Part shown: positions 4,005 through 52,529 of the stretch, one piece after another
How positions within the stretch are numbered: position 1 is the first letter of the stretch
How the letters are laid out: every line of letters starts with the position of its first letter
DNA from: Basidiobolus meristosporus CBS 931.73
Lineage: Eukaryota; Fungi; Basidiobolomycota
Length of the DNA: 61,688 nt
NCBI GenBank assembly: GCA_002104905.1
Contig: MCFE01000530.1
Coordinates: 1 to 61,688 of the forward strand
Direction: 5' to 3'
The notes under the pieces: generated by a model
What the model saw: the letters and a program-made list of their open reading frames with translations, nothing else
Told to the model about the DNA's origin: nothing
Databases searched by the model: none
Made by a program: the position numbers and the translations under genes

Positions 4005-4931
4005 TTGATTCAAACCACCTCCATACGATCATCCATCAATTTTAATATGACTTACTCATCTGAATGGTCTTTTCTCATCAATCCCATCACTACCACTGGA
4101 TTTCCTTTTGACACACTAGAGGAGATCTATTCCAAGTACTGTGGACCATCAACCCCAATCTACTCAAGGAGATCCCTTGTTAAGCTTCTCTGCTATTACA
4201 AGAACTATTGCCCTACAAGGTTTCATCCCACCATCCATGGCAACAAAAGTCCTAGAAGCTTTCATTCCCAGCTGACAGCAATGGAGAACCACCTTGCAGA
4301 GGGTATGAATGACTTAGAGCAAGCTTGGAATACTAGGTTCAGAAGCTCCAATAGACTTCCATATCCCAGAGTGTTCAGCAACAGGTTCCATATCAGGAGT
4401 ATTTTGGATACCTTCCCAGTGAGGATTAACAGACCCTCTAGAGGGCAGAGGCACTTTTATTCTGGCAAGTACAAGGCACACTGTGTGAAGTTTCAAGCAC
4501 TGTCTGACATTGAGGGTAACATCATCTGGTTTAGTGGGCTATTTGCTGGAAGTAGGCATGACAAAGCACTCTGGGTAGAGAATCATCCTGAATTCAGTAG
4601 AGGGGAGAAATGTATGGCAGACTTAGCCTATATAGGAGAGGATTGTCAGAGATTGGGATGTATTACAGCTTATAGAAAGCCAAGGAATGGAGTGCTTAGC
4701 AGGAAGCAGAAGCTCTACAATGAGATATTTAATCATTTCAGAGTAAGGGTAGAGCACACATTTGGATATCTGAAGAGATTCAGCATATTGGCAGGTAAAT
4801 ACAGAGGAAAGTCATATATAGGTGAAAACAGCAGGATAGGTAAAATAGTTAAGATACTTATTAATGCACAGTATGTTCATACAAGAAGACATCCACTGAG
4901 AGAAATGTGTCTGGAGCATTATGAAGAGTAA
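4005..4931 (+). CDS. DDE_Tnp_4-type (Harbinger/IS5-like) transposase
   Basis: Motifs ILDTFPVRINRP, FYSGKYKAHCVKFQ, FAGSRHD, MADLAYIG and RVRVEHTFGYLKRFSIL match the DDE_Tnp_4 catalytic pattern. Open frame of 308 aa; true start uncertain. Confidence 0.9.
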   Translation: MIQTTSIRSSINFNMTYSSEWSFLINPITTTGFPFDTLEEIYSKYCGPSTPIYSRRSLVKLLCYYKNYCPTRFHPTIHGNKSPRSFHSQLTAMENHLAEGMNDLEQAWNTRFRSSNRLPYPRVFSNRFHIRSILDTFPVRINRPSRGQRHFYSGKYKAHCVKFQALSDIEGNIIWFSGLFAGSRHDKALWVENHPEFSRGEKCMADLAYIGEDCQRLGCITAYRKPRNGVLSRKQKLYNEIFNHFRVRVEHTFGYLKRFSILAGKYRGKSYIGENSRIGKIVKILINAQYVHTRRHPLREMCLEHYEE

Positions 4932-5885: not shown

Positions 5886-8294
5886 ATTGACAGCCATAAT
5901 TAGATGATCCACATATAGAGCTAATATAACTGGATTTACTCTATCTGGCTTATAGAATATACTGTAGTCAGCATTACTCCTTTTGAAACTTAAAGATTCC
6001 AAATAAGAATCTATCTTGCAATTCCAGGCTCTTGGTGATTGTTTTAGACCATATAGTGACTATTTAAGCTTACAGACCAAATAGGGGTTATCTTAGTCAA
6101 CAAACCCATCAGGCTGGTACATACACATGTCCTCATCAAGCTTTCCATTCAAAAAAGCAGCTTTTACATCCATTTGATGAATAAAAAACTTATATTTGGC
6201 TGCAATAGCCAATATTAATCTAATGGAATTAAACTTGGATACCGGTGCAAAGGTCTCAGTATGGTCAAGTCCTTTTATTTCAGAGTATCCTTTGGCCACA
6301 AGTCTTGCCTTGTATCTTTTAATTGTACCATGAGCCTTGTAGTTGGTCTTGAAGACCCATCTGCATCCAATGGATTTTTGGTTAATTGGTAAATTGACTA
6401 AGTCCCAAGTTTGATTTTCCATCAGGGCCTGATATTCCTCAGACATTGCAGATCTCCAAGACTTCATCTGAGAGCAATTTAGGGCCTCTTTTACAGTCTG
6501 GGGCTCATCAATATGGACTGAATAGGCATAGGCTAAGCCTGTACCCTCATTTGTAAAGTAATTTAGGCTATTTCTTATTTGATTGGATCTCCAGGCATTT
6601 CATACTGGAATGATCACTTCTGGGATATTCCTGGGTATGGATTCTGGCTGAACCACAGTTGTAGAGTTCTCTGGAGTGAAAAATTCTCATTGATTTGCTC
6701 TGATTCAATCCTGGCAATTGGTGGACTTGAGATCAGATTTTTGTCATCATCTGAGGTCATTTTTTGTGAGAATTTTGAATTTTTATCAAACACCACATCC
6801 CTGGACTTGATTAGCTTCTTGGCTTTGGTATTGTAAAGTCTGTATGCCTTACTCTCATTGCAGTTGCCCAAAAATATGCATTTTACACTCTTTGGCTCAA
6901 ATTTTGATTGATTTCCAGGCAGTTTCTTGGCATATGCTGTGCACCCAAATATTCTTGATATCCTTACCTGGTCTGTATCCATACCATGCTTCAAATGGAG
7001 TAGAACCACAGAGTATTCTGCTATAACTCCTATTTTTAAGTTATACAGCAGTGGCAACTGATTCTGCCCAACAATCATAGGATAATACTTGATCATGGAT
7101 AATAGATCTTGCCATATCAGTTGTTGATCTGTTGGCAGATTCTGCTACCCCATATTGCTGTGGGGAGTATGGTGCAGTAGTCTATTGCTTTATCCCATGA
7201 ATTTTGCAGAATTGGATGATGAGTTTTGAGATATATTCTCCACCATTGTCAAAGCGTATTTTCTTGATTTTTTTAACAGTTTCTCTCTCTACCATGGCTT
7301 TAAACTCCCTGAACTTAGACAGAGCTTCTTCCTTTCTCTCCATGAGGTAGACCCACATGTATCTGTAAAATCATCAATAAAATTGATAAAATACTTCATC
7401 CTGCCTAAGGATAAATTTTGCTTAGGTCCACACAGATCTGAGTGAATTAAATCTAATTTTTCTTAGTTTTTATCAACCCAGAGCTCTTGAACAGTTGTCT
7501 GGCTTGTTTCCTATATATGCAGACTTCACATTGCTCTAAACTAGCTGGGGGATTAATTTTTACCCCAGAAACTAGCTGATCTTTGATCATTTTGTGCAAA
7601 TAATCAAATTTGATGTGCCCAAATCTCCTGTGCCAAAGCTTTTGTGTTTCTTTATATAAGTTACTTATACTGGCTTCTAAATATGATGGAATAAAAGTCA
7701 ACTTGTATAGATGTTGATCTCTGATACCCAAAGCAATGTTGGCACCATTTTTATCAGTGATCTTGCATCCAGAATTGTCAAAGCTGAAGCTGAGTCCTTC
7801 TACTGTGGCCTTGCTTACAGAGAGTAGATTTTTGGCTATTTCTAATACATAGAGTACTTCTTTCAAGGTCAGTGTATGGCTTCCTTCACTGCTTCTTAGG
7901 TTTACTTGGATAGTTCCTTCTCTCACTGCATCAAGTGCTCTATTGTCACCCATGAAAACCTTCCAAATTGGAATATCTTGATACTGGGTAAGAAGTTCTT
8001 TTTGGTGTGTAAAGTGTTGAGATGCTCCAGAGTCAATATACTGCATCTGAGAATCCTTGTTTGTGGTCATATTTAGTGCAGATATGAATAGTCTATCTTC
8101 AGTTGTTGCAGCATATCCATATCCAGGCTTTTTATGCTGACTATCTTTCTTTTTGAAGCACCAGTCTGATGTGTGTCCTTTCCTTTTGCAGTTGTTAAAA
8201 AACAGGTTGCTGTTGCCTTTGTAGGGTCTTGGGTACCTCCTTTGTTAGTTATCATTGCCTAGTAAAGCATTTTCTTCTTCCTTCTTATTGGCGC

Positions 8295-11200
8295 TGTGGT
8301 GGTGTATAAGTCCAAGGGAGAGATGCATCCAACACTTCTCAAGTGTTTTGTGTGTGGGGTGTTCACTGGGTGCAATAATCTCTGGCAAAAGCTTGCTAGG
8401 AATACTTGGGTTCTGTCTCTAATCTAATGTGAAGGGGAATAAAGCCACAAGCTTGTCAAGGGAAAACTCTTGAGCTACAATCCCCAACTTAGTTGGCGTC
8501 TTAACAAAAGTATGTGCTGGGTTCAGCATCCTTTGAGATGACAATGTACTAAAGCTTCCAAATTCAAAACAACTGTAAACTCCACCAGCAGGGACTTGAT
8601 AAGAATGCAGCTGTGGTCAATAGTTACAAAGACAGAAAAGTATCTTTGCCTGTACAAGAACAAACTTGGGAAAGAATCAAATATAATAAAAGATACCTAC
8701 TCTGAGTATTCCTCACAAGTAGTGCCTCCAAGGTCAGTTGGCTGACAGCACGGTTTCCTGAGAGTGTCCTGTGGTCTGGGGTTGGAAGTTCAGGTAGCAG
8801 CAGGTAGCAGTGATCACACTAATCTACAAGTTGGTATATTGATAAAAGGGATGATGATTTATTGTTGAGGGATAGCCTCCCTTATATACTTTTCTCACTG
8901 GCTAAGTGATTACTAATCATGGTGTTCCACAAGGTTCCAGATATCAATAGAAATCTTAATGACATCAGAATGATCTAAGAATGTTCTAAGTATGTGCTGG
9001 AAGATTCCAAGAGGCACAGCACATCCAACCAATCAGGAATCAGTATTCTGAAACCTGTGTAACATAGGGATACCCTATATGGTATGGAAATGATAGGGAT
9101 GGTGATATGGGTTGATCATGTGTCACAGGTACTGGTGTGGGTACTTGCCTAATATAGAAGTACTTATAGCTAGTAATCTTACATAAAGTGAGGGGTAACT
9201 TATGCAATAAGGTAAGCAAGTGTGACAGTCAACCAGCTTATGGGATAGTACTGATTGGGTAAGACAAATGGTATAAAACTAAAATAATTGTAGTAGAGAT
9301 ATAGGGAAGTAGAAAATAAGGGAATGAGCACATCTGTCAGTGGGTGTCACTGTCACCCCACTACATCCACCCCCCTCTCAGCTTTGAACTTGGGTCAAAG
9401 CAAACTAATCTTGAAGTGCAAAGTTCCTATGCTTGAATAACTTAAGTTGGTTTCCAGCAACTGGTGCTCTCAACTGGGTGTTGTCAAGCTCAGATATGTA
9501 ATAACTTCCATTTCCAATCCCTTTGGAAATGAGGTAGGGGCCAGTCCATTTGTTGTCAAACTTCCGACTCCATTGTTTGTCCAAGGTGGAATCACAGAGT
9601 AATACTGGGTCTCCTAGTGATAGTGGTTTTGGTCTTGTTGGGTGTGATTTGTCAAAGGGCACCTTGTTCTTCAGTTGTGTATCCTTAAGTTGTTCAGCAG
9701 CTCTGCTGATATTCAAGTCATGGTGATCAAGTTGCTGTATGCGAGTTGCAAGGAGGTCTTCAGTCTGCATATTGGATCTCCAATTCAATGAGTTCCAAGT
9801 GATGGTGTTTAACTCAACTGGTAGTATGTAGTCATGTCCATAGAGTAGCTTAAATGGCAATAATCCAATTGTTCTCTTGGTAGTAATTCTATCTGCCCAG
9901 AGTGCAAGATGTAATTGCGGTGGCCACTGTGTTGTGTTATTCTCACAGGTCTTGACAAGGGAGTTCACCAATGGTCCATGTCCTCTCTCTATCATTCCAT
10001 TGGCTTGAGGGTGGTAAGCTGTTGTAAAAGCAAGGTGTATCTTGTACTTTGAGCAGAACTCCTGGATCATTTGGGATGTCATCTCTCCTCTGTCAGCAAC
10101 AAACTGTTGGATGCAGCCAAATCTGCAGATGGTGTCTTCAAGTATAAATCTCCATATGGTATGGCTCTTGTTGTTGGGCAAGGCTTAAGCCTCTGCCCAT
10201 CCACAAAGGTCATCTCTAGCAACAATCAGTTACTTTTTTGATCCAGCTGTTGGCATGTGGGCAAGGTCAATAGCAACCTTTTGCCATAGACAGATTGTGT
10301 AAGTACAATGCAGTGGTTCTTCATAACGCTTGGAGGATCTCTTCTGGCAGGCTACACATGACTCAACAAAGTGTTGGATATCATAGTACATGTTTTCCCA
10401 GTAGTACCTCTGAGCTGTGGTATTTTATGTGGCTTCTTGTCCTCTATATCCTCCTGGTTCTCCTTGGTGGATACTTGTCATGATGTTCAGTTGCTCTTGT
10501 GGGGTGGTGACCACTCTTCTGGGCATAAGTCCAGGCTTCACTTGCTTAAAGAGAAGATCATCTTTGAGATAGTAGTGGTGTGCCTTCTTCCTGAGTTTCC
10601 ATCCAACTAGGTTTCTTGAGTGTCATTAGATATTCCTTGATCAGACTCCAGGTAGTTCTCTCTTGGTCTTTGATGGCAATCTGTTGGATCTCTGCATCAA
10701 TAATATCATCAAAGTGAGGGTTCAGGTCTTCAAATAGTTGTGGTCCCTTCCTGGAGAGTGCATCAGCCACAACATTTGTTTTGCCAGGGATATGTCTGAC
10801 CTCAAAGTCAAACATCTTCAGCCATGCCATCCATTGGTTTGGGGCATTATCAGGTAGGTCAGGCTTGTTGATCATCCCTATAAGTGGCTTGGCATCTGTC
10901 TCCAGGATAAAACGTGTCATGTAGAGTTGTAGCTTCAGCTTCCTCAGCATCTTCACAACTCCCAGTAGCTCTCTCTTAATCTGTGAGTACCTTTGTTCTC
11001 TAGGAGAGAATAGGCAGCTCTCATATCTGCAGGCATAGCGGTTGCCATCTTTATCATCCTGGCCAAGTAGTGCTCCAGCTCCTATAGGGCTTGCATCCAC
11101 TGTCAAAATAGGTGGGCATACATTGTTCTGATAGTCAAGAGGTCTTAGAACTGGTGGAGATACTAAGTCCTCTTTCAGTAATTGCATGGCTTCTTCTTGC

Positions 11201-14200
11201 TCTTCTCCCCAGATAAATGGGGTATTCTTTCTCTGTAGTTAGTAGATTGGTTCTGCTATCTCAGAAAATCTTGGGATCCAGATCCTAAAGAACCCACAAG
11301 CTGCCACAAAGCCACAAGCTTGTGTTAGATTTGTGGGGGTAGGCCAGTTGCGTATCTTTTGTGTCTTGGAATCTCCAGGTTAACAACCAAAGGTGTTGCA
11401 TTTTTGTCCAACAATGGATATCTTTGATACACCAAAGCTGCTTTTCTCACCACTGATGGTGAGTCCAGCTTCTTCAATGGCTCCTAATATGGCATCATTG
11501 TCTGAAATATGGTCATAGACAAACTTTCTTACTCCAGGCATGACTTCAGTGGTGTACTAGGTTTTTGGTCCTTTGATGCCTATGTCATCAACAAAGACAG
11601 CAAGTTTCTCAGGTATAAACTGGTATAGCACATTCACCATGCATCTGTGGAACTGAGCCATGGAGTTTGTAGCCCATTGGCTGAGTCTTTTCATCCTTAA
11701 AAGTCCAAATGGTGTCTGTAGTGCAAACATATCTCTTGATGTCTCATCAAGGGGAATCTGGTCATATCCTGAGTAGAGATCATTTGTGGAGTAGATGGAG
11801 TGGCCACTAAAGCTTGCTGCAAAATCATCAATAGATGGAGGTATAGCAGCATCTCTGATAGTGACAGCAGTTGCAGGTTGCATGTCTTGAATGAAATGGA
11901 GCTTTCCATTCTTCTTTTTGGTCACAAACCATCTGTTAGCATGGGGTCCATGACAAGGTTCTAGGATACCAGCTGCTATCTTCTTCTTAAGTAGGTCATG
12001 CACATCAGCTTGGAGTCCTCTGGGCAGTGGGTAAGGCTTAAATGACCAGGGTGTGTGGGGCACTGTATGAATCTTGATGGGGTTTTCAACCAATGTCTTT
12101 AAAAGTCCCATCTCCTTGTCAATATATGAGAAAACCTTATCATGTCTTTTCATGGTTTCTTCAAGTAATAGTATCTCCTCTGGTGTAAGGTTTCCATCAC
12201 CAATGATAAGTTGCTTAAGTCTCTCAGGTGTAAGTTGTATATCTTCTGGTGTTTCTTCTGGTGGTCTAATGTAATCAGTAGGTTGGGATCCATCAGTCAA
12301 AGGTGTAAGTGATGGTCTAATATTCTGTTCTACTGTCTTGTATTTTGTCCAAACTATAGCAGTCTGCTCCTGTATACCTAATGAGCAGCTCCAAATGTTG
12401 GGGTGTATATTGTCAGGCTCCTCATCTTCTTCCATAACAAGATGTGTCTTCTGGCAAGCAGTATGTGTCCTCTTATTGTTGGGTGTTACACCACTGAAGG
12501 TTGACTGTAGTCATGGGTTGGATCCTTGTATGGTGTAGCATACTGACCCATTGGAATAGTTGGTAGTTGTAGCCTTAGTACTGGTTTCCCATGGTCTACC
12601 TAGCAGAAGGTCAAAGTTTGCCTTCTGGCAGATGAAGAGGGGAAGCCAGACCTTGATTCCTTGCACCTCAATAGGGAACTTGTGTACTACACCATAGAGT
12701 GGACTAGATCCTGAGTTTGCATCAGTCATGTTCCATCCAATATCTCTATCAACAGGCAGTAGCTCCTTGCTTCTAAGTGTCTTCCAGAAGTCTAGTGGCA
12801 TAACACAAATCTCCAAGCCACTGTCAATATGGCAGTCAACAGGGTCATCATATATATACCCTTTGACCACAGCAGTTGCAACTGAGTAAAAGGTCTTATA
12901 TTCAGTAGTGTTGTCATCCTTTTGGTGGTCTTCATGGTTTGTCTGAATTATATGGGTGTCCATATGTTCAACAGCTTGTTGTCTGGTTCTAAGCTGCTCA
13001 TCAAAGGTCTTCCTGACAGATGAGGATACACTCATGATTTCTCCAACCAACAAAGTGAGGTTCTGCTTCAGCAGCTTCTCAGTAATCAGTTGAGGGCTTG
13101 AGTAGCTTGCTATCTTTGAGGTCATCTGAAAGTGAGGCAATGGATCTTGGGTGGGCAGCATACTAGGCCTCTTGTCAATAACAACTTCAGGTTCTTTGAA
13201 TTGTGGACTTTTAAGGATGGGTTTGGCAGGTTCTTCAGGGAGGTGTCTTTTGGTAGCAAAGGCATCAACTTTGTATTGTCTGTTGTCAGGGCTGCTTGGA
13301 TTCACTTTATGAGTCCCAATAGGGACATCAACAGTAATCTTTCTGGTTGCTGAGTCAGATTTCTGGAAAAGGGCTCTCATCCCTCCTCTTTGGAAATTAG
13401 TGGGAATCCTTCTTCCTTCCTTGTCAGCAAGCATTCCATCAGCATCAAACTGTACTGCTCCTTCTCTGAGTAGCTGACTAAGCTCTGAGCATTCGTGTCT
13501 GGCATGCTGAGTAGAGTCACACCAGATTCAGTGCCTGGGCAAAGGTCTTTGGCCCTCAGTAGCAACCTCAGCTGAGCCATTAATCTTGAGGGCTAGCTTT
13601 TGTAGCTGTTCAGCAAGTTGGTCAATTCTGTTGGTAGTGTATGTCTGATTGTCAGCAGCAGCACTTCTTGGCTTTCTGGTTGACTGGTCTGGCAGATTAG
13701 ATGTCAGGAGTCTCCTAAAGGTAGAAGTTTGCTTTGCCTCTAGGAGAACACGCTTCATCTCTGCAAAGCAAGGAATGCCAGACTTGTCATCCTTGGCTGC
13801 ATGTAAGTCAACTTTCCTTGCCAAGTCCTGGGGAAGCCCTTGTGCAAGGTAAAGTGTCATGGTAAACTCAGTTATAGCCTGGGACTCTAGGAGTGGCTTG
13901 GCCATATCTCCATATTGTTGCATGAACTCTTCAAGTGGTAGCTTGGAAAGTCCAGTTATTCCAAAGTGTCTGATGTCTTCAATTCCATAGTATATCTGGG
14001 GTCTACCATACTCAGTCAGTAGGTAGGTCTTCATTAAGGCCCAGTCAGTGAGAATGTCTCCTTGTCTGAGAATCTTAGTGGTAATATCATTGGTGCAGTA
14101 GTAGGGGAAGTCTTCAGCCATTTCTTGTTCAGATAGGCTGCACATCTTGCAGAGCTTCTCCCATTTGAATATAAAGCTTTCCACATTCTTTCCATCAAAC

Positions 14201-15450
14201 TGTGGGGCTCCATGTGAGAGTGGTAATGGCATAGAGTTCATTTTGGGCAGGTAGGTTGGTGTTGTAATCTTGATAATATTGGTAGTCTCTTTTCAATAGG
14301 TGGATAACAGCTCAAATCTTCAGGTAAATCTTGTTGGGTCCTAGGGAGCTTGTATGAACCCCCCACATTGGGTGCCAATATGTGGTGGTGTATAAGTCCA
14401 AGGGAGAGATGCATCCAACACTTCTCAAGTGTTTTGTGTGTGGGGTGTTCACTGGGTGCAATAATCTCTGGCAAAAGCTTGCTAGGAATACTTGGGTTCT
14501 GTCTCTAATCTAATGTGAAGGGGAATAAAGCCACAAGCTTGTCAAGGGAAAACTCTTGAGCTACAATCCCCAACTTAGTTGGCGTCTTAACAAAAGTATG
14601 TGCTGGGTTCAGCGTCCTTTGAGATGACAATGTACTAAAGCTTCCAAATTCAAAACAACTATAAACTCCACCAGCAGGGACTTGATAAGAATGCAGCTGT
14701 GGTCAATAGTTACAAAGACAGAAAAGTATCTTTGCCTGTACAAGAACAAACTTGGGAAAGAATCAAATATAATAAAAGATACCTACTCTGAGTATTCCTC
14801 ACAGTTAGTGCCTCCAAGGTCAGTTGGCTGACAGCACGGTTTCCTGGGAGTGTCCTGTGGTCTGGGGTCAGAAGTTCAGGTAGCAGCAGGTAGCAGTGAT
14901 CACACTAATCTACAAGTCGGTATATTGATAAAAGGGATGATGATTTATTGTTGAGGGATAGCCTCCCTTATATACTTTTCTCACTGGCTAAGTGATTACT
15001 AATCATGGTGTTCCACAAGGTTCCAGATATCAATAAAAATCTTATGACATCAGAATGATCTAAGAATGTTCTAAGTATGTGCTGGAAGATTCCAAGAGGC
15101 ACAGCACATCCAACCAATCAGGAATCAGTATTCTGAAACCTGTGTAACATAGGGATACCCTATATGGTATGGAAATGATAGGGATGGTGATATGGGTTGA
15201 TCATGTGTCACAGGTACTGGTGTGGGTACTTGCCTAATATAGAAGTACTTATAGCTAGTAATCTTACATAAAGTGAGGGGTAACTTATGCAATAAGGTAA
15301 GCAAGTGTGATAGTCAACCGGCTTATGGGATAATACTGATTGGGTAAGACAAATGGGATAAAACTAAAATAAGTGTAGTATAGATAGAGGGAAGTAGAAA
15401 ATAAGGGAATGAGCACATCTGTCAGTGGGTGTCACTGTCACCCCACTACA
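8295..15450 (-). mobile_element. Full-length Ty3/gypsy LTR retrotransposon with frameshifts and stops
   Basis: LTRs 8295-9365 and 14381-15450 (~1070 bp; TG...CA; ~17 differences counted by eye). 4-bp TSD GCGC (8291-8294, 15451-15454). PPT AGAGGGGGGTGGA (~9366-9378). PBS TGGCACCCAATGTGGGG (~14361-14377). gag 13528-14241 (APQFDGKNV, CCHC remnant), protease CHIDSG, RT (NRWFVTKKK, DLYSGYDQ, VFVDD), RNase H (VDASPIGAGALL), integrase (YHPQANGMIER). It splits copia gag at TTATTGGCGC|TTG. Confidence 0.95.
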
Positions 15451-19599: not shown

Positions 19600-22500
19600 T
19601 GTTGTAAAAATTTGTATTTTCACCTAAATACTCACCTAACTTAGTCACTTAGATCATTACCTTCAAATCCTAGAGAATACTGACCAAATTCCTTTTTGGG
19701 ATTTACTTAGAATATTTTCACCAAAATACCAGGTACCCAGGACATGAAAATTCTCAAAGTTGTCCAAACAGCCCCAAACTTTGCACACATGTTCTTGGGA
19801 CCTTTCCTAACCTATTCTACATGTTTGTAATGCCAAGATCAGGTAAAAGTATAAATACTACTTTTCCATTCAATAAATCATTAAGTGAAAACCACATAAT
19901 CTACTTGTTCTTCCAGTCACTTCCAATATCTCCAAGACTCTTACAACAGGTTATGCGCCCTAAGCTGTCATTCTCTGCAATGTCTACTACTGCTATTACT
20001 GAAATTTTTCCCTCTGCTGAAAAATTGGATAAATAAAACTACCAAGTGTGGAAGGTGAAGATGAAGATGCTGCTACAAGAAAGAGGCCTTTGGGATATTG
20101 TCATGGGAGAAGAATGCCCTCCTTAAAACGTGGGAGAGGAAGCCTTAAAGTACCAGACGAAAGAACAAAGTGCCTTTAACTGCATTTGCCTTAATGTCAA
20201 GGACAAATTGCTAATTCAATGCTCAAGAGCAAAAACGGCAAAGAATGCCTGGAAGGCATTAGAAGACACCTACCAGTCATGCTCAGCTGCCAAGAAAATG
20301 TATCTGAGACCAAAATTCTTTACTACAAAGATGCTGCCAGGAGAAGAAATAAAAAATCTAATTAACAGAATTACCCTGCTGGTAGATGAGATGGAATCTG
20401 TGGGCGTACCAACTACTGATGAGGATGTGATAGTTACCATCCTGAATAGCCTGACAGACAAGTTTCAGGGCCTTGTATCAGCCCTAGAGTCCAGAACTCA
20501 AGATTTGACCTTAAATTATGTATATGGAAGGCTCCTGGATGAAGAATTAAGAAAAACAAGCGCCAATAAGAAGGAAGAAGAAAATGCTTTAATAAGCAAT
20601 GATAACCAACAAAGGAGGTACCCAAGACCCTACAAAGGCATCAGCAACCTGTTTTGTAACTGCTGCAAAAGGAAAGGACACACATCAGACCGGTGTCTCA
20701 AAAAGAGAGATTATCAGCCAAAGAAGCCTGAATATGGAAATGCTGCAACAACTGAAGATAGACTATTCATATCTGCACTAAATATGACCACAAACAAGGA
20801 TTCTCAGATGTAGTATATTGACTCTGGAGCTTCTCAACACTTTACACACCAAAAAGAACTTTTTACCCAATATCAAGAAATTCCAATTAAGAAGGTTTTC
20901 ATGGGTGACAATAGAACACTTGATGCAGTGGAGAAGGAAGTATCTAAGTAAACCTTAGAAGCAGTGAAGGAAGCCATACACTGACCTTTAAAGAAGTACT
21001 CTATGTACCAGAAATAGCCAAGAACCTACTCTCTGTAAGCAAGGCCACAGCAGAAGGACTCAGTTTCAGTTTTGACAATTCTGGATGCAGGATCACTGAT
21101 CAAAATGGTGCCCATATTGCTTTGGGCATCAGAGATCAGAATCTATACAAGTTGACTTATATTTCATTATATCTGGAAGCCAATATAAGTAACTTAAATG
21201 AAGAAACACCAATGCTTTGGCACAGGAGATTTGGACACATCAATTTTGAATATTTGCATAAAATGATCAAAGATCAGCTAATTTCTGGAGTGAAAATTGA
21301 TCCCCCAGCTAATTTGGAGCACTGTAAAGCCTGCATATATGGGAAACAAGCCAGACAACCATTCAAGAGCTCTGGGTTAATCAAAACTAAGAAAAAATTA
21401 GATCTAATTCACTCAGATCTGTGTGGACCTATGCAAAATTTATACTTAGGCGGGATGAAGTATTTAATCACTTTTATTGATGATTATACAAGATACACAT
21501 GGGTCTACTTCATGGAGAGAAAGGAAGAAGCTCTGTCTAAGTCCAGGGAGTTTAAAGCCATGGTGGAGAGAGAAACTGGTGAAGAAATCAAGAAAATACG
21601 CTCTGACAATGGTGGAGAATATACCTCAAAACTCTTCCTCCACTTCTGCAAAATTCATGGGATAAAGCAAGAGACTACTGTACCATACTCCCCACAGCAA
21701 AATGAAGTAGCAGAACAAGCTAACAGATCAATAATTGATATGGCAAGATCTATGATCCATGATCAAAAATTATCCTATGATTTCTGGATGGAATCACTTG
21801 CCACAGCTGTATACCTTAAAAATAGGAGTTATAACAGAATACTTCATGATTCTACTCCATTTGAAGCATGGTATGGATACAGACCAAGTGCAGAACATCT
21901 AAGAATATTTGGGTGTACAGCATATGCCAAAAAACTGGCCGGATATCAGTCAAAATTTGAGCCAAAAAGTGTAAAATGCATATTTTTGGGCTACTGCAAT
22001 GAGAGTAAGGCATACAGACTCTACAATACCAAAGCATAGAAGCTGATCAAGTCCAGGGATGTGTTGTCTGGTGAAAATTCAAAATTTGGGCAAGAAGCCA
22101 AACTGAGAAGGATGGATTGGATATAGTTGAGATTGCAAGGATCTTGCTATTATAAGCTCGAAGATTTTCCGGCAGGTTGGTAGGAGTGAAACTGGTGGTA
22201 AGAACCTGGGAGTGAGTGTTTCCCCTTCCCTTTGTATAAGGGTATTACATTTGCCTGTGACCAGGCCTTTGGGGTAGTCAATTGTTGGGCACAGATAGAG
22301 TAGAATGGGAGAAGTAAGTGACTCATTTTGGAGTAGCACACCCGGAGTAGATTGTAGGTAATCAAGTCATGTCCAGGTGCAGTATTTGCAGGAAGCTTCT
22401 TTAAAACTTTCTCCAGAAGCTTTGCTGAAACCAAAATTGGAGATGTTGGACTGCTAGATATGTTACCAGTATGGTAGAAAGGAGGAGTGGGATACACGGT

Positions 22501-24207: not shown

Positions 24208-24723
24208 ACTTTCATCCTTGTGAAATTGAGGCTGATTAACTTGTTCACCAATTGTTTGGGATTGTGGAAATACTGATTTCAGAGTCATCCAAAAGACCAC
24301 AAACTCCGTTTGAGGCATATAAAGACCGGAAGACAGCCTCATATCACATAAGCCACGGCGGTAGTCAGCCAATTTCTGCGCATGGCAATCTATTGCATCA
24401 TCTGGCCATTGATCATCATTTAGGAATTTACGTCAAGTCAACCTACGTAAAGGGGTTCCCGATTTCTTGATAGGATGGAAGGTATTCACTAACTGAGATC
24501 TGAACAGCCAATCCATCAAACTTCCGTCACTTCCTCCCCCCCCACACCGCAAACCTAGATATACTCCCGATGTCTTGACCTGGCCAGAGAAAGGCCTGAT
24601 CGAGGGTAGCTCTCTGAGGCTCATCTACCATAGTCATTAATCTTGCTTGGTGAGCCAAACCATCTGCATCATCCCTGTACCTATATAACGACCGCATTCC
24701 GCCTTTGCTGGGTACAACAAACC

Positions 24724-25242
24724 ATGCTCAGACAACAAGCACTCCCAATCGCCCTTCTCATGGCCGCATTGACCATGGGTGCCCAATTACATTCCACCAC
24801 TGACCCAGCTTCCCTCGGAAATGTGGCCAGCGGATCGGCAGCCAGCGAATCTCTTGGCCCGGCACAGAATCCCGGGGACGGATATACCGTCCGGGAGTTC
24901 AAGTCAAACAAGAAGGAAGACGCATCAAGGATCATGAGTCTTATTCTCCAGCAGATGACGAACAGCATTCACAAGAAGGAGTACCCCCCACTCTCAAACA
25001 TGCTTGACATGGATGATGCGAACACCGGTGCTGCCTCTGATCCGAAAGCTCCGCCTGTCGAGACCGGAGATGTAGGGGAGGGAGAAGACACCGCTGAGAT
25101 GAACCCTGAAGAAGCAGAACTGTGGGGACGATATGGTCGCTGGAGACGTGGATACTGGGGTCGAGGGCGCTTTGGGAGATACGGCGGGTATAATCGCTGG
25201 GGAGGTGGAAGGTATGGTGGGTGTTACGACTGGGACTGTTGA
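24724..25242 (+). CDS. Secreted precursor, 172 aa: signal peptide, acidic pro-region, Arg/Gly/Trp/Tyr-rich C-terminal peptide ending CYDWDC (copy 1, intact)
   Basis: ATG 24724 (MLRQQALPIALLMAALTMGA) preceded by TATATAA. Same length as, and conserved with, the intact paralog at 45862-46380. Confidence 0.85.
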   Translation: MLRQQALPIALLMAALTMGAQLHSTTDPASLGNVASGSAASESLGPAQNPGDGYTVREFKSNKKEDASRIMSLILQQMTNSIHKKEYPPLSNMLDMDDANTGAASDPKAPPVETGDVGEGEDTAEMNPEEAELWGRYGRWRRGYWGRGRFGRYGGYNRWGGGRYGGCYDWDC

Positions 25243-26524
25243 TTAGAGGAGAGAATTCCACCAATAAAATGGAAGGTAGTTGAACAATCAACCTTTGCTG
25301 TAGAGATGGGACCAACAACGTGGGAAACAAATGGACCCATCTTGTGTGTATCGTTCAATCTATGCATGTGACCGATTTCCCTCAAGAAAGACTCCTGTCT
25401 GTCAAAGCTCCATTTGGGTAAAGATGGGCGCCATTACAAAGGTGACGTTTACCAGGAAAGGTTCCCAACGGACGCCCTTGAAGATCATGGCCATGGTTGG
25501 AGGGGGGTGGGAAGCATCCGAGAGCGCATTTGAGTGCGACGGATAGGGCTGAGTCACCTGCGAGTGAAGGGGCCTTTCAGCTGATGGATTGTGTTGATTT
25601 GGAACTGAACGCAATGGATGGGTTTGCAGCTTGGTCCGAGATTGGGTTGGGATATTCCGAAGAATCAACTCGCCTAAAATGGACTGGTCGCTTGAAATTC
25701 ATTGGTGTGCCAGTGGTGGTTGAATTTAGTTAGATCCATCTGTGAGCGACAGATATGCTGCTGAGCGGGTGGATATCTGAATCCTCAGCAGATTCCGGAG
25801 TTGGAGGTTGTCTGTCACGAGAGCAGCCAGGCTTCCAACCACGGTTGATCAAATTCCATTCATGTACAAATGAAAGTGGGAAATTCACATGATTCTTCAA
25901 TTCGCATCCCAACCGAACCGAGCCTGGTGACCTGTGTTCCGGAATCATCTACGGCGGCTGCGAGCGCCGAATCACGTCGGATTAGAGTGAAACCCTGGAA
26001 TCAAGAACCCCCCGGAAAAAGGGAAGAGTGGGGCCAGTTTTGGCAGGAGGGATATGAGATCCATGGATCTACTCGGTGAACAGGAAACCTGATCTGTGTA
26101 AACTGGGCACAATTCACCGAATCAACACCAATTTGAGCCGTCGAAGGTTACCCAAGCAAATCCGTTCAAGCGAACAGTGCATCGGCCACAAGCGAGTCGA
26201 CCCTCTCACGTCGTTCCACAACTCCGTTCGCAGAGATTGGTGGGGATTGATGAGTCCACCCACCCCAATTCAAAGATTAAATACCCTTCCTTCGCCAGCG
26301 GGCCCATCCGTTTCACCGTATTCTTCTTCCCTCGCTTCCCCCTCCCCATTCTTGGCACCTTCGTCTTCAGTACTGAGGCGAAACCCTGTATTTGTAGCCC
26401 CTACCCGGACGAACTCCCCATCTTTCCAAGGCTCTGGAAGCTTTGTCAGCCCCTTTTCTTTCCTCCACCACTGTCGTCTGGTCCGATTCCTTTTGCGGGC
26501 ACCTTCCACTTGATCAATCAAATT

Positions 26525-44259: not shown

Positions 44260-45861
44260 CCCTCCTGTTCTATTAGAATCCATTGTTTGTCGAGCGTTTG
44301 GCTGAACAACGGCACAATCCATCATCTAATTTTAGCGAGGCTTTATCTGAGCTCATGTGATACTTGGAAGGGCCTTTATCTGGAAATGATTAAAGTCAAG
44401 AGTCGATTGATGATTAATTTGTCGGAATCCAAGGTTCCCATTTAGAATCCCCAACTCCAAATATTTACCTATTGTCCATTGGCTCGAGGAATTGATAAAT
44501 TATTGCGCTATAAAGACCGACCATCTCGTAACTCAAACCTTTAGTTCTGGTTTGTTCGATTCCGTGCACCTACCCTACCCTACCCTACTCCACCAACTCC
44601 AAACGCGACAAACATGAGTTTTATGGACGATCTGAAGTCCGGGAAATTCTCGGTCTATGCACAATGGTATTTGTCCTCGGCACCTTACTGTCGCTGGAGT
44701 TGCACTAACCAAGCTTAACTTCGCGTTAGGGTTGCTATGCTGTCTGCCCTTCGTACGTACCAGCTTGAGCGTCCCACATTGTCTGGGAATCACTAACCGT
44801 CCTGGATTTTGCCCATTTAGTGTTGATCATCCTCGGGATCGTTGAATTCCTCAGAGTGCCGATTTTCTCTATTCTCGGCTTGTAAGTGTTGTCGCTATCC
44901 CTCGGCTCGGGCCACTCAGGTCGAACAAGACTAACCCGTCGAAACTCTAGCGTTTTCACTGTTTTGATCATTTTCATGGAGATCTCTTTCTTGACGAAGG
45001 TATGTTTGACTTTCCCTCAGATATGCCATGGCGTGGAAGCTTACCAAACGATTACAAAATATTGCAGTGTTGTCCTACTAGCCCTACGTTGTAAGTATAT
45101 GTACAAGCAAGATGCTATGAACGAGCATGATTTCTCAACAGGGAATTGACTTATTTTAGTGATAACTTCATCAAGAAGCTCTCGGGTAGCCATATCAGAG
45201 CTGGTGTCTACTTAGTGTAAGAATAGCTCGAATCTTACTACAAAATTAATTTACCAACCGCTGAATTGATCTCTAGCTTCGCCATCGTCATGTGGCTTTC
45301 TCTGATCCAACATTTCAACGTCCTGTTCATTCCCGCATTGACATTGACCTTCACTGCTATCTTCTACGGTAAGAATATACTAGGCTTGTCCTTTTTGCAT
45401 TGGAAGACACCGTCTAACGTGTTCCTCACAGCCACCGGTTACTTCAAAGGTCAAGAGAGAACCTCCACCTCCATGATGCCTGGCGCTGGAAGATTCGTCT
45501 CCATGGTCTAACTTGACGGTGAAGCAATCGCATATATTTCCGACAAATACTTTTCTTTGCACAGTATATACAGTTTATTTCATGTGAAATTTGATTTTCT
45601 CATAAATCTATATATATTTTCATACCATTGACATATCGTGTTTCATGTTGATAACGTCGAATCTATCTATATACTTGGGTTGCACATTGGGTGGTGAAAG
45701 GCAGTATAGTAAAAGGCAGTACCAGTCTTCGCGATTTACTCCCCCAAATATAAAAGACATGCTGATGTCAACAGTCCGTGCGTGATTGCATCTCCAGATC
45801 TATATTGGGAATGGACGATTCCGCACACTGCCAATGCCTGTGCAACTATTTATTTATCAAA

Positions 45862-46380
45862 TCAACAGTCCCAGTCGTAGCATCCGCTGTACCTTCTACC
45901 TCCCCACCAACCATACCCACCATATCTCCCGAAGCGTCCTCGGCCCCAGTATCCACGTCTCGAGCGAGCAAATCTTCCCCACAGCTCAGCTTCCTCGGGA
46001 TTCTCCTCAGAGATATCCTCACCCTCACCTCCACTCCTGGTCTCAACGGTGTGCTTCTTTGGTTCTGAGGCAGCTCTAGTTCGCGTGTCATCCATTTCGA
46101 GCATGTTCGAGAGTGGAGGATACTCCTTCTTTTGCATGCTGTTTGTCATCTGCTGAAGAATAAGGTTCATGATCCTTGATGCGTCTTCCTTCTTGTTTGA
46201 CTTATACTCCCGGACGGTATACCCGTCCCCAGGATTCTGTGCTGGACCAAGTGATTCGGTGGATACAGAGTTGGTGGCCACGTTCCCAGGAGCAGTTGGA
46301 ACAGCGATGGACTGCAGTTGAGCACCCATGGCCAGTGTGGCTATTAGGAGGGTGAATGGGATTGCTAATTGTCTGATCAT
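45862..46380 (-). CDS. Secreted Arg/Gly/Trp/Tyr-rich peptide precursor, 172 aa (copy 2, intact)
   Basis: MIRQLAIPFTLLIATLAMGA...NPEEAE-LWGRFARSRRGYWGRGRFGRYGGYGWWGGRRYSGCYDWDC. AATATAAAA upstream. Confidence 0.85.
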   Translation of the reverse strand: MIRQLAIPFTLLIATLAMGAQLQSIAVPTAPGNVATNSVSTESLGPAQNPGDGYTVREYKSNKKEDASRIMNLILQQMTNSMQKKEYPPLSNMLEMDDTRTRAASEPKKHTVETRSGGEGEDISEENPEEAELWGRFARSRRGYWGRGRFGRYGGYGWWGGRRYSGCYDWDC

Positions 46381-46910
46381 ACTGCAGGCCAGGTTCTGTA
46401 GCCTTAGCCTTCAGCAGGCCAAATATTTTATATTGACACCAGAATACATCATGTGGTTTGGTTGTCCTAGCTAGTTTAATGAAAACAGTATATGAGCTCT
46501 AGCGAGCTACTCCGAATCAGGGAAATCTCTGGTGTAAAGAAGAGTGACAGTAGTCTGATGAATTGACTGTTTTCTATTTAGTGCATCAGCATTTTATCCC
46601 ACCATTCTGTCATTATGGTGAACACATGATCGGACTGGAGACTCAGAGATTTGCTCTATACAGCTGATATATCATAAAGTTGAATATAGTGAAGTCTTGG
46701 CCGAAGTGTTTGCACACTAGAAGGAATTCAGTAGGTACGACTGTCGAGATGATATAAAAACGGGACATATACAAACCGCAGCACCCTTCTTGACAAAGTA
46801 TGCCAACATACATAAAACGTTGCAGTAGGTGCACGTTGTCCTGTATGCGACTATACACTGGTATTTTGTTCTATGGGATCAACCAATTACCTATCATTTG
46901 TAAATTGTAA

Positions 46911-47382: not shown

Positions 47383-48811
47383 ATGCGTTGCTTCAGCATC
47401 TACACTCTTACCTTCCTCGGCCTTACTGCTGTCTCCTGTGAGGTACTCACCTCCAACATCGTAGATCCATCCTTCAGGGTGGAGAATTACGACCCAGCCA
47501 CCGACTATTTCCCAGACAAAGTCACATGTACGAGCCACGCCATTTGTATTTACCATAAGATAGCGTATTAATGCATTCCATCCGTTTAGTTAACAATGAC
47601 ACCAAGCGTAGTATTGACTACAGAATGAACTGGAAGTATGTGCAGCTTTCACAGACTGATACGTACATCCTCTACCAGCGCGGGACTCCTCAGCCGGAAC
47701 GTGTCAGCAAGTACGACAAGTTCTTTGAAATCCCGCTGAATCGAGTGGACATTGCGAACTCGACTGCGGCTAGCTATCTAGATGTAAGTTACTATTGACA
47801 CGAATGATTTGGAAGCATTGTCTGACACATGGTTTATTCTAGATGCTAGGCTTAAGTGAGCGTATCGCATCTGTCGAGCCACAATCCTTCACGTCCCCGT
47901 GCATTGCCAACAACAGTTCAAGTGCAAATGTTGATGCACTTTTTTCCCCATCCATATATGCTGATGGAAACAAAACCATCAACATTGTTGAGTACACGTG
48001 GTACACTCCAGTTATGAGATCAGATCTACTCGAAGTTTATTCGGTCTTCTTCAACTTGGAGAAGACTGCCAGCAAGGTCGCACAAGAGATTGAGGACAAC
48101 TATAACTGCGTCAAGAGTGAGGTACAATCGATGACGGCCAAGACTACCCCAAAGATTGCCTGGGTTTATGTATTCGATGATTCACCCTCGGAGAGAGCAT
48201 ACGTTCACTACACTCCGAATCACCTACACTATCTGACGCAGGATAGTGGCGCACAATTACTGGTAGAGTTTGAGGAAAGTAGTACTCCTACAGCTACGGG
48301 ACATCCATTGAATGAGTTCCTTGAAGTCATCAAGGATGCAGATATTGTAGTGGATATGTCAGATTTCATTCACCTGAACATTACCTACCCTACCGTTGAT
48401 GAGGTACTGCAACTGTACAACTTGTCTGTGACTGACACACAGTACAAGTTCATCAGCAACAAGGCAGTATACCGCGTAGACAGAACCCAAACCAAGAGCG
48501 GCGATGCCGATTGGTTCTTCAATGCCGTTGTGATGGCTGATGCTGCACTGCAGGACACAGTGAATATGGTCCACCCTGGCTTCAAGAGTAACTACACTTT
48601 CCACTGGATGCGTAACCTCTTCGATGGTGAAAAGCTTAATGGCACGCAGCAAAGCACTTGTGCTGATCCCAAGGCGCCACTCGCAAATGTAGCCTACAAG
48701 TGTGATGCCAAGATCAAGACTGATACCAACGATGGGGTCAGCTTTTTCAGTCCCAACTCAGCTCTTGTTTACTTCGGGTTGGCTTCCGTTATAGCTGCCT
48801 ATTTGGGCTAG
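47383..48811 (+). CDS. Periplasmic-binding-protein-like (BtuF/CBA1-like) surface protein, copy 1, intact, ~435 aa
   Basis: Exons 47383-47527, 47590-47783, 47843-48811 join in frame. Signal peptide, DYFPDKV, YQRGTP, FEIPL, SPC, FFNLE, KIAWV, DSGA, ADIVVD, DWFF.AV..D, WMRN and a C-terminal hydrophobic (GPI-like) tail. Confidence 0.85.
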
Positions 48812-48989
48812 TGTATTACACACCACCAATACATCAACTATTACTGTGAGTAACTTCTCATAATCGAAGGCAGTTTAATAAATAATTGTATGTCATAACA
48901 TTACGACGATCTCATTGATTTCACAATCTGGATTCAAGTCTTGTCATTATTCACAGCTCTGAGCTAAATTTGTACGGGCGTATAATTTC

Positions 48990-49499
48990 ATTTATTTATC
49001 GAACTGGTCGTCCCAGTTGTAGCGCCCGTCATATCTTTTACCTCCTCACCGACTATTATTGTCGTATCCCCCAAAGCGTCCTCGAATCTAGCATCCGTAT
49101 CTTCCCCACTTAGTCACCCTTCCTCGGCATTCCTCACTAAGCCAGCCTCGCCTCATCTCCACTATTGAGGTCCATGGCCGGCTCCTGAGAATCAGTGACC
49201 GGATTAGCCCCATCTTATCCATATCAAGTATGCTAGAGTTACTCTTTGTTGGGCATACTCTTCGTCGTCCGCTGGGATATAAGGTTCATGATCCTTTACG
49301 CATCTTCCTTCTTTTATGACTTGAGCTCCTGGGCGGTGTATCCGTTCCCAGAATTCTTTGCTGGACTAAGTAATTCGGTGGATGTTGATCATCTGGCCAC
49401 GTTCCCAGGAGCAGCTGAGTCAGTGGTAAACTGCAGTTGAGCACCAATGGCCAGTGTGGCTATTATGAAGGAGAATGGGATTGCCAGTTGTCCGATCAT
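48990..49499 (-). pseudogene. Peptide-precursor pseudogene (unit 2)
   Basis: ATG 49499 retained. Premature TGA at ~49388, and TAG/TGA at Trp positions of the tail. Confidence 0.85.
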
Positions 49500-50501
49500 A
49501 TTCCAGGTCAGATTCTGAGACAGCAGCTCTTAGCAGAACAAAGAAATAAGCTCCAATAAGCCACTATGAGCTAGACAACTCTCTTGAGCGAAAGTCAGTA
49601 ACGGTAGTCTGATGAATTGGTTGTTTTCTGTTTAATGCACCAGCACTTATGATGAACACATGATCGGACTGAAGACTCCAAGATTTGCACTATACGGCTA
49701 ATATATCATGAAAATAAATATAGTGAAGTCTCGGCCGAAATATTTCCGCACCAGATGGAATTTGGTAGGTACGCTTGCTAAGGTGAAATGAAAAGTGGTC
49801 ATATACAAACTACAGTTCTCTTCCTGACAAAACATGCTCAGTCAGTGCACGTAGCCGATGTTTGTGAGGTGTATAGCTTTCAAAATTGTAGTTGTCACTA
49901 AGCGAACAGTAGAGTAGAGCCAAAAATGGTGACCGAATACGCTGTCTCCATCTATTGTTCTGCATGCGACTATACACTGGTATTTTGTTCCGTGGGACCA
50001 GCCAATTACCTATCATTTGTAATTTGGAAGAGCTATGCCAAGCGCCAATTTACCATATTGAGATTGTTTAGCATCCACTAGTGATAGCGTCGCGGCTGTT
50101 GCAACACTGCTGACAAGGAATAGAAGCAACAGTGTTACATACGAGTGTCCTTTCCCTCGTGGTAAATGATGTCGCGTAACTAATTTGAGCATAATAGTTG
50201 GTGTGATCTATCCATATATCTATGCCAAGCGCCAATCTACCATATTGAGATTGTTTGGTGTCCACCAGTGTTAGTTATGTAGCTGTTGCAACACCACTGA
50301 CAAGGAGTGGAAGCAACACTGTTACATACGAATGTTCGATGCCTCGAAGTATAGGAATTCGTGTAACTAATTTGAGCATAATAGTGGGTGTGATCTATCC
50401 TATTTTGTGCCATGGTTCTGGATGATCAGCCAATATGTTCGAATGTACGATGGCCAGTTATTATTTAAGTGTGCAGCACGAAACATCCAACATCAATACA
50501 C

Positions 50502-51987
50502 ATGCGTTGCTTTAGCTTTTACACTCTTACTTTCCTCGGCCTTACTGCAGTCTCCTGTGAGGTACTCACCTCCAACATCGTAGATCCATCCTTCAGGGTG
50601 GAGAATTACGACCCAGCCACCGACTATTTCCCAGACAAAGTCACATGTACGAGTCACTTCGTTTGTATTCACACTGAGATAGCGTATTAATGCATTCCAT
50701 CCGTTTAGTTAACAATGCAACTGAGAGTCGTATCGAATACAGAATGAATTGGAAGTATGTGCAGCTTTCATCTACTAATAGGTACATCCTCTACCAGCGC
50801 GGGACTCCTCAGCCGGAACGTGTCAGCAAGTATGACAAGTTCTTCGAAATCCCGCTGAATCGAGTGAGCATTGCAAATTCGACTGCGGCTAGCTATCTAG
50901 ATGTAAGTTTCTACTGGCATGAATGATTTGGAAGCATTGTCTGACACATGGTTTATCCTAGATGCTAGGCCTAGGTGAACGTATCGCATCTGTCGAGCCA
51001 CAATCCTTTACATCCCCGTGCATTGCCAACAACAGTTCGAGTGCAAATGTTGATGCACTCTTTTCCCCATCCATATATGCCGATGGAAACAAAACCATCA
51101 ACCTTGTTGAGTATACGTGGTACACTCCAGTTATGAGATCAGATCTACTCAAAGTTTATTCGGTCTTCTTCAACCTGGAAAAGACTGCCAACAAGATCAC
51201 ACAGGACATTGAAGGCAACTACAACTGCGTCAAGAGCGAGGTACAATCGATGACGGCTAAGACAACGCCAAAGATTGCTTGGGTCTACATAACCGATGCC
51301 TACACCTTCTCCTCGAACATATCCTACGTCTACTACACTCCGAACTACTTATACTCTCTGACGAAGGATAGTGGCGCTCAACTAATGATGGAATTCGAGG
51401 AAAATTATAGTATTACAGCATTCGGATATCCATTAAATGAGTTCCTTGAAGTCATCAAGGATGCAGACATCATAGTGGAGATGTCAAGTTTCATTCACCA
51501 GAATATCACCTACCCCACAGTTGATGAGGTACTGCACCTGTACAACCTGTCTGTGACTGACACACAATACAAGTTCATCAGCAACAAGGCAGTATACCGC
51601 GTAGACAGAACCCAAACCAAGAGTGGCGATGCCGATTGGTTCTTCAACGCCGTTGTGATGGCTGATGCTGCACTGCAAGACACAGTGAATATGGTCCACC
51701 CTGGCTTCAAGAGTAACTACAATTTCCACTGGATGCGTAACCTTTTCGATGGTGAAAAGCCTAATGGCGCGCAGCAAAGCACTTGTGCTGATCCCAAGGC
51801 ACCACTCGTGAATGTAGCCTACAAGTGTGATGCCAAGATCAAGACTGATACTAACGATGGGGTCAGCATTTTCAGTCCAAGCTCAGCTCTTGTTTACTTC
51901 GGGTTGGCTTCTGTTGTGCTGCCTATTTGGGCTAGTGCATTACACATCATTAATACGTCTACCATTACTGTAAGTAACCTATTATAA
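50502..51987 (+). CDS. BtuF/CBA1-like protein, copy 2; 1-bp deletion alters the C-terminal anchor
   Basis: Exons 50502-50646, 50709-50902, 50962-51987. GTTGTGCTGCC replaces GTTGTAGCTGCC at ~51917, giving the tail VVLPIWASALH... instead of VVAAYLG*. Confidence 0.8.
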
Positions 51988-52169
51988 TCGAAGGTAGTCT
52001 AATAAATAATTGTAAGTCATAACATTATGTCGATCTCATTGATTTGATGATCTGGCTTCAAGTCTTGTCATTATTCACAACTCTAAGTTGGTGTTGTGTG
52101 AGTGTATTGCTGCATGTTCGAAAGAGTATCACAGTGATTATACCGAATTACTGGTTGTTCACTTATCAA

Positions 52170-52529
52170 ACTAGCAGTCTTTGAACCTGCCATACCCTTG
52201 ACCTTCCCACCGAGCATAGTTAGTATATATCCCGTGGCGTCCTCAAACCTAGTAACCATGTCTCCAGCGACCGTATCTTCCCCACTTAGTAATGTTTCCT
52301 TAAAATTCCTCTCTAAATTGCCCTTATCCTCCGCTCAACTTTTGTCGTCGATGGTGGTATCCCTGTATCGAGGACTGAATGAGCTCTTGTCTTTTAAATG
52401 TCAAGTATGTTTGAGAGTGGAGAATACTCCTTCTGGTACATGCTGCTTGTCGTTTGGTGGTAAATAAGGCTCATGGTTCGTTACGCGTCTTCCTTCTTGC
52501 TTGACTTGAGCTCCTGGACGGTGCATCCG
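52170..52529 (-). pseudogene. Peptide-precursor fragment (unit 3)
   Basis: Homologous to the C-terminal two thirds of the 45862-46380 gene; 5' part deleted. Confidence 0.75.

Follow-up and report, generated by a model that had tools for sequence, protein, structure and literature searches.

Predicted secreted proteins with an acidic pro-region and a cationic Gly/Arg/aromatic tail form a divergent branch of a Basidiobolus meristosporus superfamily

Two intact paralogous genes of Basidiobolus meristosporus CBS 931.73 encode 172-aa proteins in which a predicted signal peptide and an acidic pro-region precede a 40-aa cationic tail rich in Gly, Arg, Tyr and Trp. By sequence comparison, the pair is a divergent, partly decaying branch of a superfamily of ~60 genes known only from this B. 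meristosporus strain. Our preferred, still tentative, reading is that the 172-aa proteins are precursors of host-defence-like cationic Arg/aromatic peptides that may act on competing microbes. The window analysed here is the complete contig MCFE01000530.1 (61,688 bp, assembly GCA_002104905.1). B. meristosporus belongs to the Zoopagomycota, lives in the gut and dung of reptiles and amphibians, and is occasionally an opportunist in humans and animals (PMC9391592).

The preliminary description of this DNA reported two intact 172-aa paralogs, and both are found in the window, where five other copies carry stops and frameshifts. The two genes and the elements of copy 1 are as follows.

24724-25242, + strand: copy 1, single-exon ORF of 172 aa, NCBI gene model annotated as 'hypothetical protein'
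45862-46380, - strand: copy 2, intact paralog, single-exon ORF of 172 aa, NCBI gene model annotated as 'hypothetical protein'
24724-24783, + strand: predicted signal peptide of copy 1 (residues 1-20), with Arg3 and a hydrophobic core of 13-15 residues, assigned by inspection only
24784-25119, + strand: acidic pro-region of copy 1 (residues 21-132), net charge -12, with the helix and the acidic linker inside
24910-24969, + strand: conserved pro-helix of copy 1 (residues 63-82), predicted by AF2
25102-25131, + strand: junction NPEEAEL-WGR of copy 1 (residues 127-136), best conserved of all elements across the superfamily
25120-25239, + strand: 40-aa Gly/Arg/Tyr/Trp tail of copy 1 (residues 133-172), net charge +7
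25222-25239, + strand: terminal CYDWDC of copy 1, Cys-x4-Cys, followed by the stop codon at 25240-25242

The two proteins align without gaps and are identical at 127 of 172 residues (74%). The NPEEAEL junction and the CYDWDC end occur in both copies as first noted, and the reported tail counts also hold, with 9 Arg, 5 Trp, 2 Asp and 2 Cys in each tail and a net charge of +7. By composition count, the tails further contain 11-13 Gly and 5-6 Tyr, and the share of Gly, Arg, Tyr and Trp together is 33/40 and 30/40 in the two copies (~80%). The net charge of the pro-region is -12 in copy 1 and -7 in copy 2, and the acidic block ahead of the tail (the linker at residues 96-132 in copy 1) carries -12 and -8, respectively. 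Inspection and charge counts confirm the proposed layout, in which a signal peptide and an acidic pro-piece are followed by a cationic aromatic tail. In the predicted signal peptide of copy 1, the Kyte-Doolittle window mean of the core reaches 2.25, Gly19-Ala20 precede Gln21, and the N-terminus aligns with the N-termini of all superfamily branches. The AF2 model of the 172-aa protein has a mean pLDDT of 49.8 and a pTM of 0.16, with the helix at residues 63-82 as its only confident part, and the ESM Atlas pLDDT of 0.48 for the protein is in line with disorder. From these predictions, we infer that the 172-aa proteins are exported, intrinsically disordered pre-pro-proteins.

Copies 1 and 2 are in inverted orientation and flank a 20.6-kb housekeeping-gene block (24724-46380 with both copies included), which contains Duc1, CPDase, His_Phos_1, metacaspase, Cg6151-P and others. 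The GC content is ~50% in this block and 40-45% outside. Positions 1-24000 of the window contain retrotransposon and transposon debris with ~40% GC, and copy 1 has retrotransposon debris on one side and the housekeeping-gene block on the other. The following elements are recognizable in the debris.

4005-4931, + strand: Harbinger-like transposase ORF
6614-8070, - strand, and 20130-22039, + strand: copia-like gag and integrase pieces
9405-14241, - strand: gypsy-like gag, protease, RT, RNase H and integrase ORFs

As far as sequence can tell, copies 1 and 2 are real protein-coding genes. The 110 nucleotide differences between them are distributed over the three codon positions as 28, 21 and 61, with 61 at the third position, and neither frame is damaged at a dS of 0.77. 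The comparison of dN and dS that had been proposed for the intact copies gives a ratio of 0.195 overall (Nei-Gojobori, Fisher p 8e-14), which indicates purifying selection. The ratio is 0.17 for the tail alone (Fisher p 7e-4) and 0.09 for the helix region at residues 60-95, so the pro-helix is under more constraint than the tail. The acidic linker is the fastest-changing part, with a dN of 0.26. The preliminary description took the equal Arg and Trp counts of the two tails as a sign of selection on composition, but this argument is weak, since a simulation of random mutation up to seven amino-acid differences keeps both counts in ~7% of trials. It is the dN/dS result, not the equal counts, that supports a coding sequence under selection. 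Long antisense ORFs overlap both tails, at 24941-25330 on the - strand (129 aa) and at 45786-46079 on the + strand (97 aa). Both seem to result from the GGN/CGN-rich composition of the sense strand, and the differences between the paralogs cluster at third positions of the sense frame.

In blastn between the two copy regions, homology covers the CDS only, and global alignment of the 150 nt upstream gives a score of 23.5, compared with -7.8 +/- 4.7 for shuffled sequences. The flanking signals are listed below, and the decayed copy c6 carries the same upstream blocks. RNA-Seq data exist for B. meristosporus CBS 931.73 (Tabima et al. 2020, PMC7466969).

24574-24723, + strand: promoter-proximal block of copy 1, 76% identical to the region upstream of copy 2 (129 nt aligned)
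24682-24687, + strand: TATA-like box of copy 1, within the conserved upstream block
46427-46432, - strand: TATA-like box of copy 2
25263-25268, + strand: AATAAA of copy 1, 21 nt past the stop, a possible poly(A) signal
45849-45854, - strand: AATAAA of copy 2, just past the stop

The claim that the family is unrecognised stands. Neither Pfam (0 families for both 172-aa proteins) nor the PDB sequence search (chance-level matches, the best an unrelated hydrolase with E 0.006) nor the ESM Atlas (whole protein or tail, best score 0.81, below the usable level) gave a match, and all relatives are 'hypothetical proteins' from a single strain. The Atlas match with 0.81, an oomycete 'glycine-rich protein', was rejected because its score is below the level where shuffled proteins also score. 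A search with residues 120-172 found K493DRAFT_389012, which shares the NPEEAELWGRYG junction. Its contig, MCFE01000688.1, contains several intact ORFs of 139-149 aa that end in a CDWGC-type motif. We note that K493DRAFT_389012 itself (150 aa, L006:10001-10960) consists of unrelated upstream exons fused to the junction and tail of a damaged CDWGC gene. The intact 139-149-aa ORFs on this contig are real family members, and some of them differ from the listed gene calls, for example the one at 4106-4537 on the + strand.

Homology between the 172-aa and CDWGC proteins rests on profile comparisons, because pairwise BLASTP between them is not significant (E 0.12 to 15). The hhalign comparison of the two profiles gives 99.8% with E 1.2e-27 and is collinear over the full length. 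With the pro-regions alone the match is still 97.9% (E 5.9e-13, residues 1-81 against 1-73), so the homology is not an artefact of the low-complexity tails. An exhaustive phmmer search of 1.84 billion cluster representatives returned real relatives from B. meristosporus only, including a (WGRGR)n-tailed protein with the same junction. A profile search collected 16 clusters with 62 sequences, all from one strain, in protein sets that do not include the other Basidiobolus genomes. Two further candidates from the phmmer search, a metagenomic PKD-repeat protein (P0006) and a Branchiostoma repeat protein (P0007), were rejected, as both are multi-stretch matches to unrelated repeat proteins. In the tree, which has a midpoint root only, the 172-aa pair is sister to the CDWGC clade, and the WGRGR clade lies outside as the deepest branch.

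The CDWGC family (139-149 aa, for example K493DRAFT_364256 and K493DRAFT_320101) resembles the 172-aa pair in having a signal peptide and an acidic linker. Both groups also contain an NVAS-x-S motif, an SNK-x-EDA helix start, a PEEA(E/Q)L-WGRYG junction, a YWGRG-x-(F/Y)GRYGGY core and a terminal Cys pair around Asp-Trp, but their pairwise identity is only 26-30%. Compared with the CDWGC proteins, the 172-aa pair has ~25-30 extra linker residues, including KKEYPPLSNML, and a tail of 40 instead of 49 aa that is less pure, with Phe, Asn, Ser and Ala. The end of the 172-aa proteins is Cys-x4-Cys (CYDWDC), while that of the CDWGC proteins is Cys-x3-Cys, and we therefore treat the pair as a separate branch and not as strict CDWGC members. 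Two live genes represent the 172-aa branch, compared with dozens in the CDWGC branch, where 90% clusters contain 28 and 11 near-identical members. The (WGRGR)n proteins (K493DRAFT_357305 and K493DRAFT_309478) share with the pair the (D/N)PEEAEL-WGR junction, a signal peptide, an acidic block and a cationic Gly/Arg/Trp tail. Unlike the 172-aa tail, theirs is a pure repeat with a net charge of +13 to +15, without Tyr and usually without Cys, and their pro-region is longer than that of the pair and has a Lys/His-rich insert. The relatives P0009, P0017 and P0019, on 81-kb and 15-kb contigs, have such a pure WGRGR tail of +13 to +15 and the (D/N)PEEAEL-WGR junction, together with a much longer acidic block and, in one of them, a Lys/His-rich insert.

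The boundary after EEAE, previously suggested as a release site, is the best-conserved element in three otherwise divergent branches. All three branches (172-aa, CDWGC and (WGRGR)n) share E129, E130, L133, W134, G135 and R136 without exception, and this conservation makes the junction fit a processing or recognition site. The junction EEAEL-WGR has no Lys or Arg upstream and no dibasic site, and we know of no protease specificity that the sequence E-E-A-(E/Q)-L-W-G-R matches. The internal Arg-Arg (residues 141-142), the other release site suggested before, is a poor candidate, because it is not conserved (intact 139-aa relatives have RWGS there) and lies inside the conserved core. Across the superfamily, tails with +7 to +9 follow acidic blocks with -6 to -12, and tails with +13 to +15 follow acidic blocks with -14 to -21, in a sample of three or four independent lineages. 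Since the acidic block grows with the charge of the tail, these counts support a role of the block in masking the tail charge. The Cys pair around Asp-Trp is found in two branches, with x4 spacing in the 172-aa proteins and x3 spacing in the CDWGC proteins, and is absent in the WGRGR branch, so the putative disulfide loop would be optional and not the core of the mechanism.

The five further copies were found by tblastn on the minus strand of the window at 49-60 kb, and all have in-frame stops and frameshifting gaps. These broken copies were read in the reference frame only, with X at gaps and * at stops.

49010-49499, - strand: decayed copy c3, 72% nt identity to copy 2, reading frame broken by several stops and by frameshifting gaps
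52189-52528, - strand: decayed copy c4, 58% nt identity, stops and frameshifts, tail remnant recognizable
55686-55930, - strand: decayed copy c5, 63% nt identity, deletions and stops
56772-57266, - strand: decayed copy c6, 80% nt identity, frameshifting gaps of 11, 1 and 17 nt, a stop inside the terminal motif
59853-60026, - strand: decayed copy c7, N-terminal remnant only

Tail remnants are visible in three of the five decayed copies, and two of the five are annotated as truncated models, including c6 as the 112-aa model K493DRAFT_359547. Copy 2 and the decayed copies alternate with the genes of a CBA1/BtuF-like array (47843-61688), which consists of five tandem 322-aa ORFs with a GPI-signal-like C-terminus. 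These ORFs are 62-87% identical to the first one, for which Pfam gave no match, and the last runs past the contig end. The contig MCFE01001028.1 contains a near-identical version of the array, including the same alternation and a counterpart of copy 2. At a dS of only 0.017, the two contigs may be alleles, homeologues or the result of a recent duplication. In the copy 2 counterpart (L001:10001-10519), annotated as the 133-aa protein K493DRAFT_309220, codon 134 is an in-frame stop where the tail would have its first Trp. Downstream of this stop, the tail is still in frame and without any amino-acid change. The stop at the junction suggests that the 172-aa branch may be losing function. We looked for a CBA1-like gene or remnant beside copy 1 and found none, so the peptide gene is independent of the binding-protein neighbour.

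On the leading reading, the signal peptide would carry the protein into the ER, and the amphipathic pro-helix and acidic linker would hold the +7 Arg/aromatic tail in a soluble, harmless state on its way out of the cell. A protease would then cut at or next to the PEEAEL-WGR junction, and not at a Kex2-type dibasic site. The released peptide of ~40 aa may close its terminal Cys-x4-Cys into a small disulfide loop and would act extracellularly by multivalent Arg/aromatic contacts. Its most likely targets would be envelopes or nucleic acids of competing microbes in gut and dung. Arg/Trp-rich peptides are classic antimicrobials. The Gly/Tyr-rich NLP-31 of C. elegans is antimicrobial and binds DNA but does not permeabilise membranes (PMC5019075), and a membrane-active product, as first proposed, is therefore not implied by the composition.

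Several observations speak against a defence peptide. Selection on the tail is purifying and not diversifying, which is less typical of arms-race peptides, and the junction lacks the dibasic site of classical precursors, with the internal Arg-Arg not conserved. In addition, five of the seven copies in the window are dead, and the copy on the second contig is stopped at the junction. The composition of the tail would suit an adhesive or coacervate equally well. The main rival explanation, which is serious although less probable than the leading reading, is that the tail or the uncut protein is a material. It would be a polymer of the sticker-and-spacer type, in which Arg and Tyr/Trp/Phe are the stickers and Gly forms the spacers, and would coacervate when the acidic mask is removed or neutralised. 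Such a material might be a glue, for example the adhesive of the capilliconidial beak, or a cross-linkable wall of the zygospore or conidium with the Cys pair and Tyr as cross-link points. The ~80% Gly/Arg/Tyr/Trp content of the tail, the predicted disorder of the protein, the strong, non-diversifying conservation of the tail, and the high number of near-identical CDWGC copies (28 and 11 per 90% cluster), which suits a dosage demand, are all consistent with a material. It is further supported by reports that the Arg-rich mussel protein mfp-3 works by coacervation (PMC9705477) and that capilliconidia of Basidiobolaceae bear adhesive material at the apical beak (PMC13370150). The likeness to mfp-3 is, however, one of composition only, and the genes are without any link to conidia or walls. 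No tyrosinase or similar gene is located near either copy, and Tyr/Cys cross-linking cannot be a common mechanism, because the (WGRGR)n branch lacks Tyr and usually lacks Cys.

It is unlikely, in our view, that the intact ORFs are relics that were once maintained and are now dispensable and turning into pseudogenes like their five neighbours, with the working members being the amplified CDWGC and (WGRGR)n genes elsewhere. The dead majority of copies in the window and the stop at codon 134 on MCFE01001028.1, at so low a dS, would fit such a relic, but a dN/dS of 0.2 across a dS of 0.77 with both frames undamaged, the conservation of the promoter block at 76% and the survival of copy 1 alone beside transposon debris argue against it. 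The alternation with 322-aa genes in the 46-62 kb array and on the second contig would also be expected if the peptide gene were the partner of the adjacent CBA1/BtuF-like surface binding-protein gene, amplified with it as a divergent pair. This idea is largely refuted and very improbable, as copy 1 is intact and constrained without a trace of such a neighbour, every extra array unit combines a dead peptide gene with an intact binding-protein gene, and the CDWGC relatives on MCFE01000688.1 form arrays without a binding-protein gene. We give equally little weight to a RiPP-like or hormone-like reading, in which the protein would be processed and modified to a small product and only a short part, such as the C-terminal Cys loop, would be active. 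The architecture of signal peptide and leader recalls fungal RiPP precursors, and the terminal C-(Y)DW-x-C motif is kept in two branches. Nevertheless, the neighbours of both copies are housekeeping genes (Duc1, CPDase, His_Phos_1, metacaspase and Cg6151-P) with no modifying enzymes among them, the (WGRGR)n branch has no Cys loop at all, and constraint extends over the whole tail and not the end alone.

A wider interpretation, which we put forward as a speculative possibility, is that Basidiobolus evolved its own precursor system, in which a lineage-specific, non-dibasic PEEAEL-WGR code releases charge-masked Arg/aromatic/Gly 'sticker-spacer' peptides. The three tail types (CDWGC, CYDWDC and WGRGR repeats) may then make up a new class of extracellular peptides in fungi. 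Its members might be the protein glue of the insect-borne capilliconidia or, alternatively, antimicrobials, in which case they would be the first ribosomal ones of the Gly/Arg/aromatic type from an early-diverging fungus. To our knowledge, hardly any ribosomal peptides with an antimicrobial or adhesive function have been described from early-diverging fungi, and the habitat of Basidiobolus, the guts and dung of reptiles and amphibians, is crowded with microbes. The 172-aa branch is old and independently constrained, and its design of acidic mask, junction and cationic tail has been kept through deep divergence. The conserved element is the junction and not the internal Arg-Arg, which gives a concrete cleavage hypothesis. 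Natural loss variants are at hand in the five dead copies and the one copy with a stop at the junction, and the latter, on MCFE01001028.1, would be a natural 'pro-region only' variant if Basidiobolus has such a system. If the peptide is active, tails of this length can readily be synthesised, and a glue would offer a simple model for Arg/aromatic coacervate adhesion.

The layout of the 172-aa proteins can be compared with several known systems. Kex2-processed fungal precursors include alpha-factor, candidalysin/Ece1 and the KEP repeat proteins. Like them, the 172-aa pair would be secreted by a fungus in precursor form, with cleavage presumably taking place in the secretory pathway, but it has no Lys-Arg flanking the product and no repeated product units, and its sole Arg-Arg is part of the tail and has no equivalent in intact relatives. 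Nematode NLP-29/31 and CNC peptides resemble the Basidiobolus family in that they are secreted, are of low complexity with much Gly/Tyr(/Arg/Trp), and have genes that form multigene clusters (PMC5019075). They lack such a long acidic pro-region, however, and neither the exhaustive nor the profile search found homology between them and the 172-aa pair.

Mussel mfp-3, an adhesive primer rich in Arg, Gly, Tyr and Trp, is defined by its DOPA and hydroxy-Arg modifications. It resembles the 172-aa tail, in composition only, as a small, secreted, disordered, Gly/Arg/Tyr/Trp-rich protein (PMC9705477), and Arg-driven coacervation is plausible for the 172-aa tail. In contrast to the 172-aa pair, mfp-3 has no acidic pro-region, and the lineages are unrelated.

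Precursors with an anionic pro-piece are also found in animals, in alpha-defensins, cathelicidins, the preprodermaseptins of frog skin and the arminins of Hydra. These host-defence precursors and the 172-aa pair share the order of signal peptide, acidic pro-piece and cationic C-terminal peptide, as well as charge compensation. There is no sequence relationship between them, and the junction of the 172-aa pair lacks Lys-Arg or any other dibasic site. The tail is Gly/aromatic-rich and predicted to be disordered, in contrast to the helical or beta-sheet peptides of animals. We regard the design as a variation on the known 'anionic pro-piece / cationic peptide' theme, set apart by an unusual, non-dibasic junction and a predicted-disordered Gly/Arg/aromatic product.
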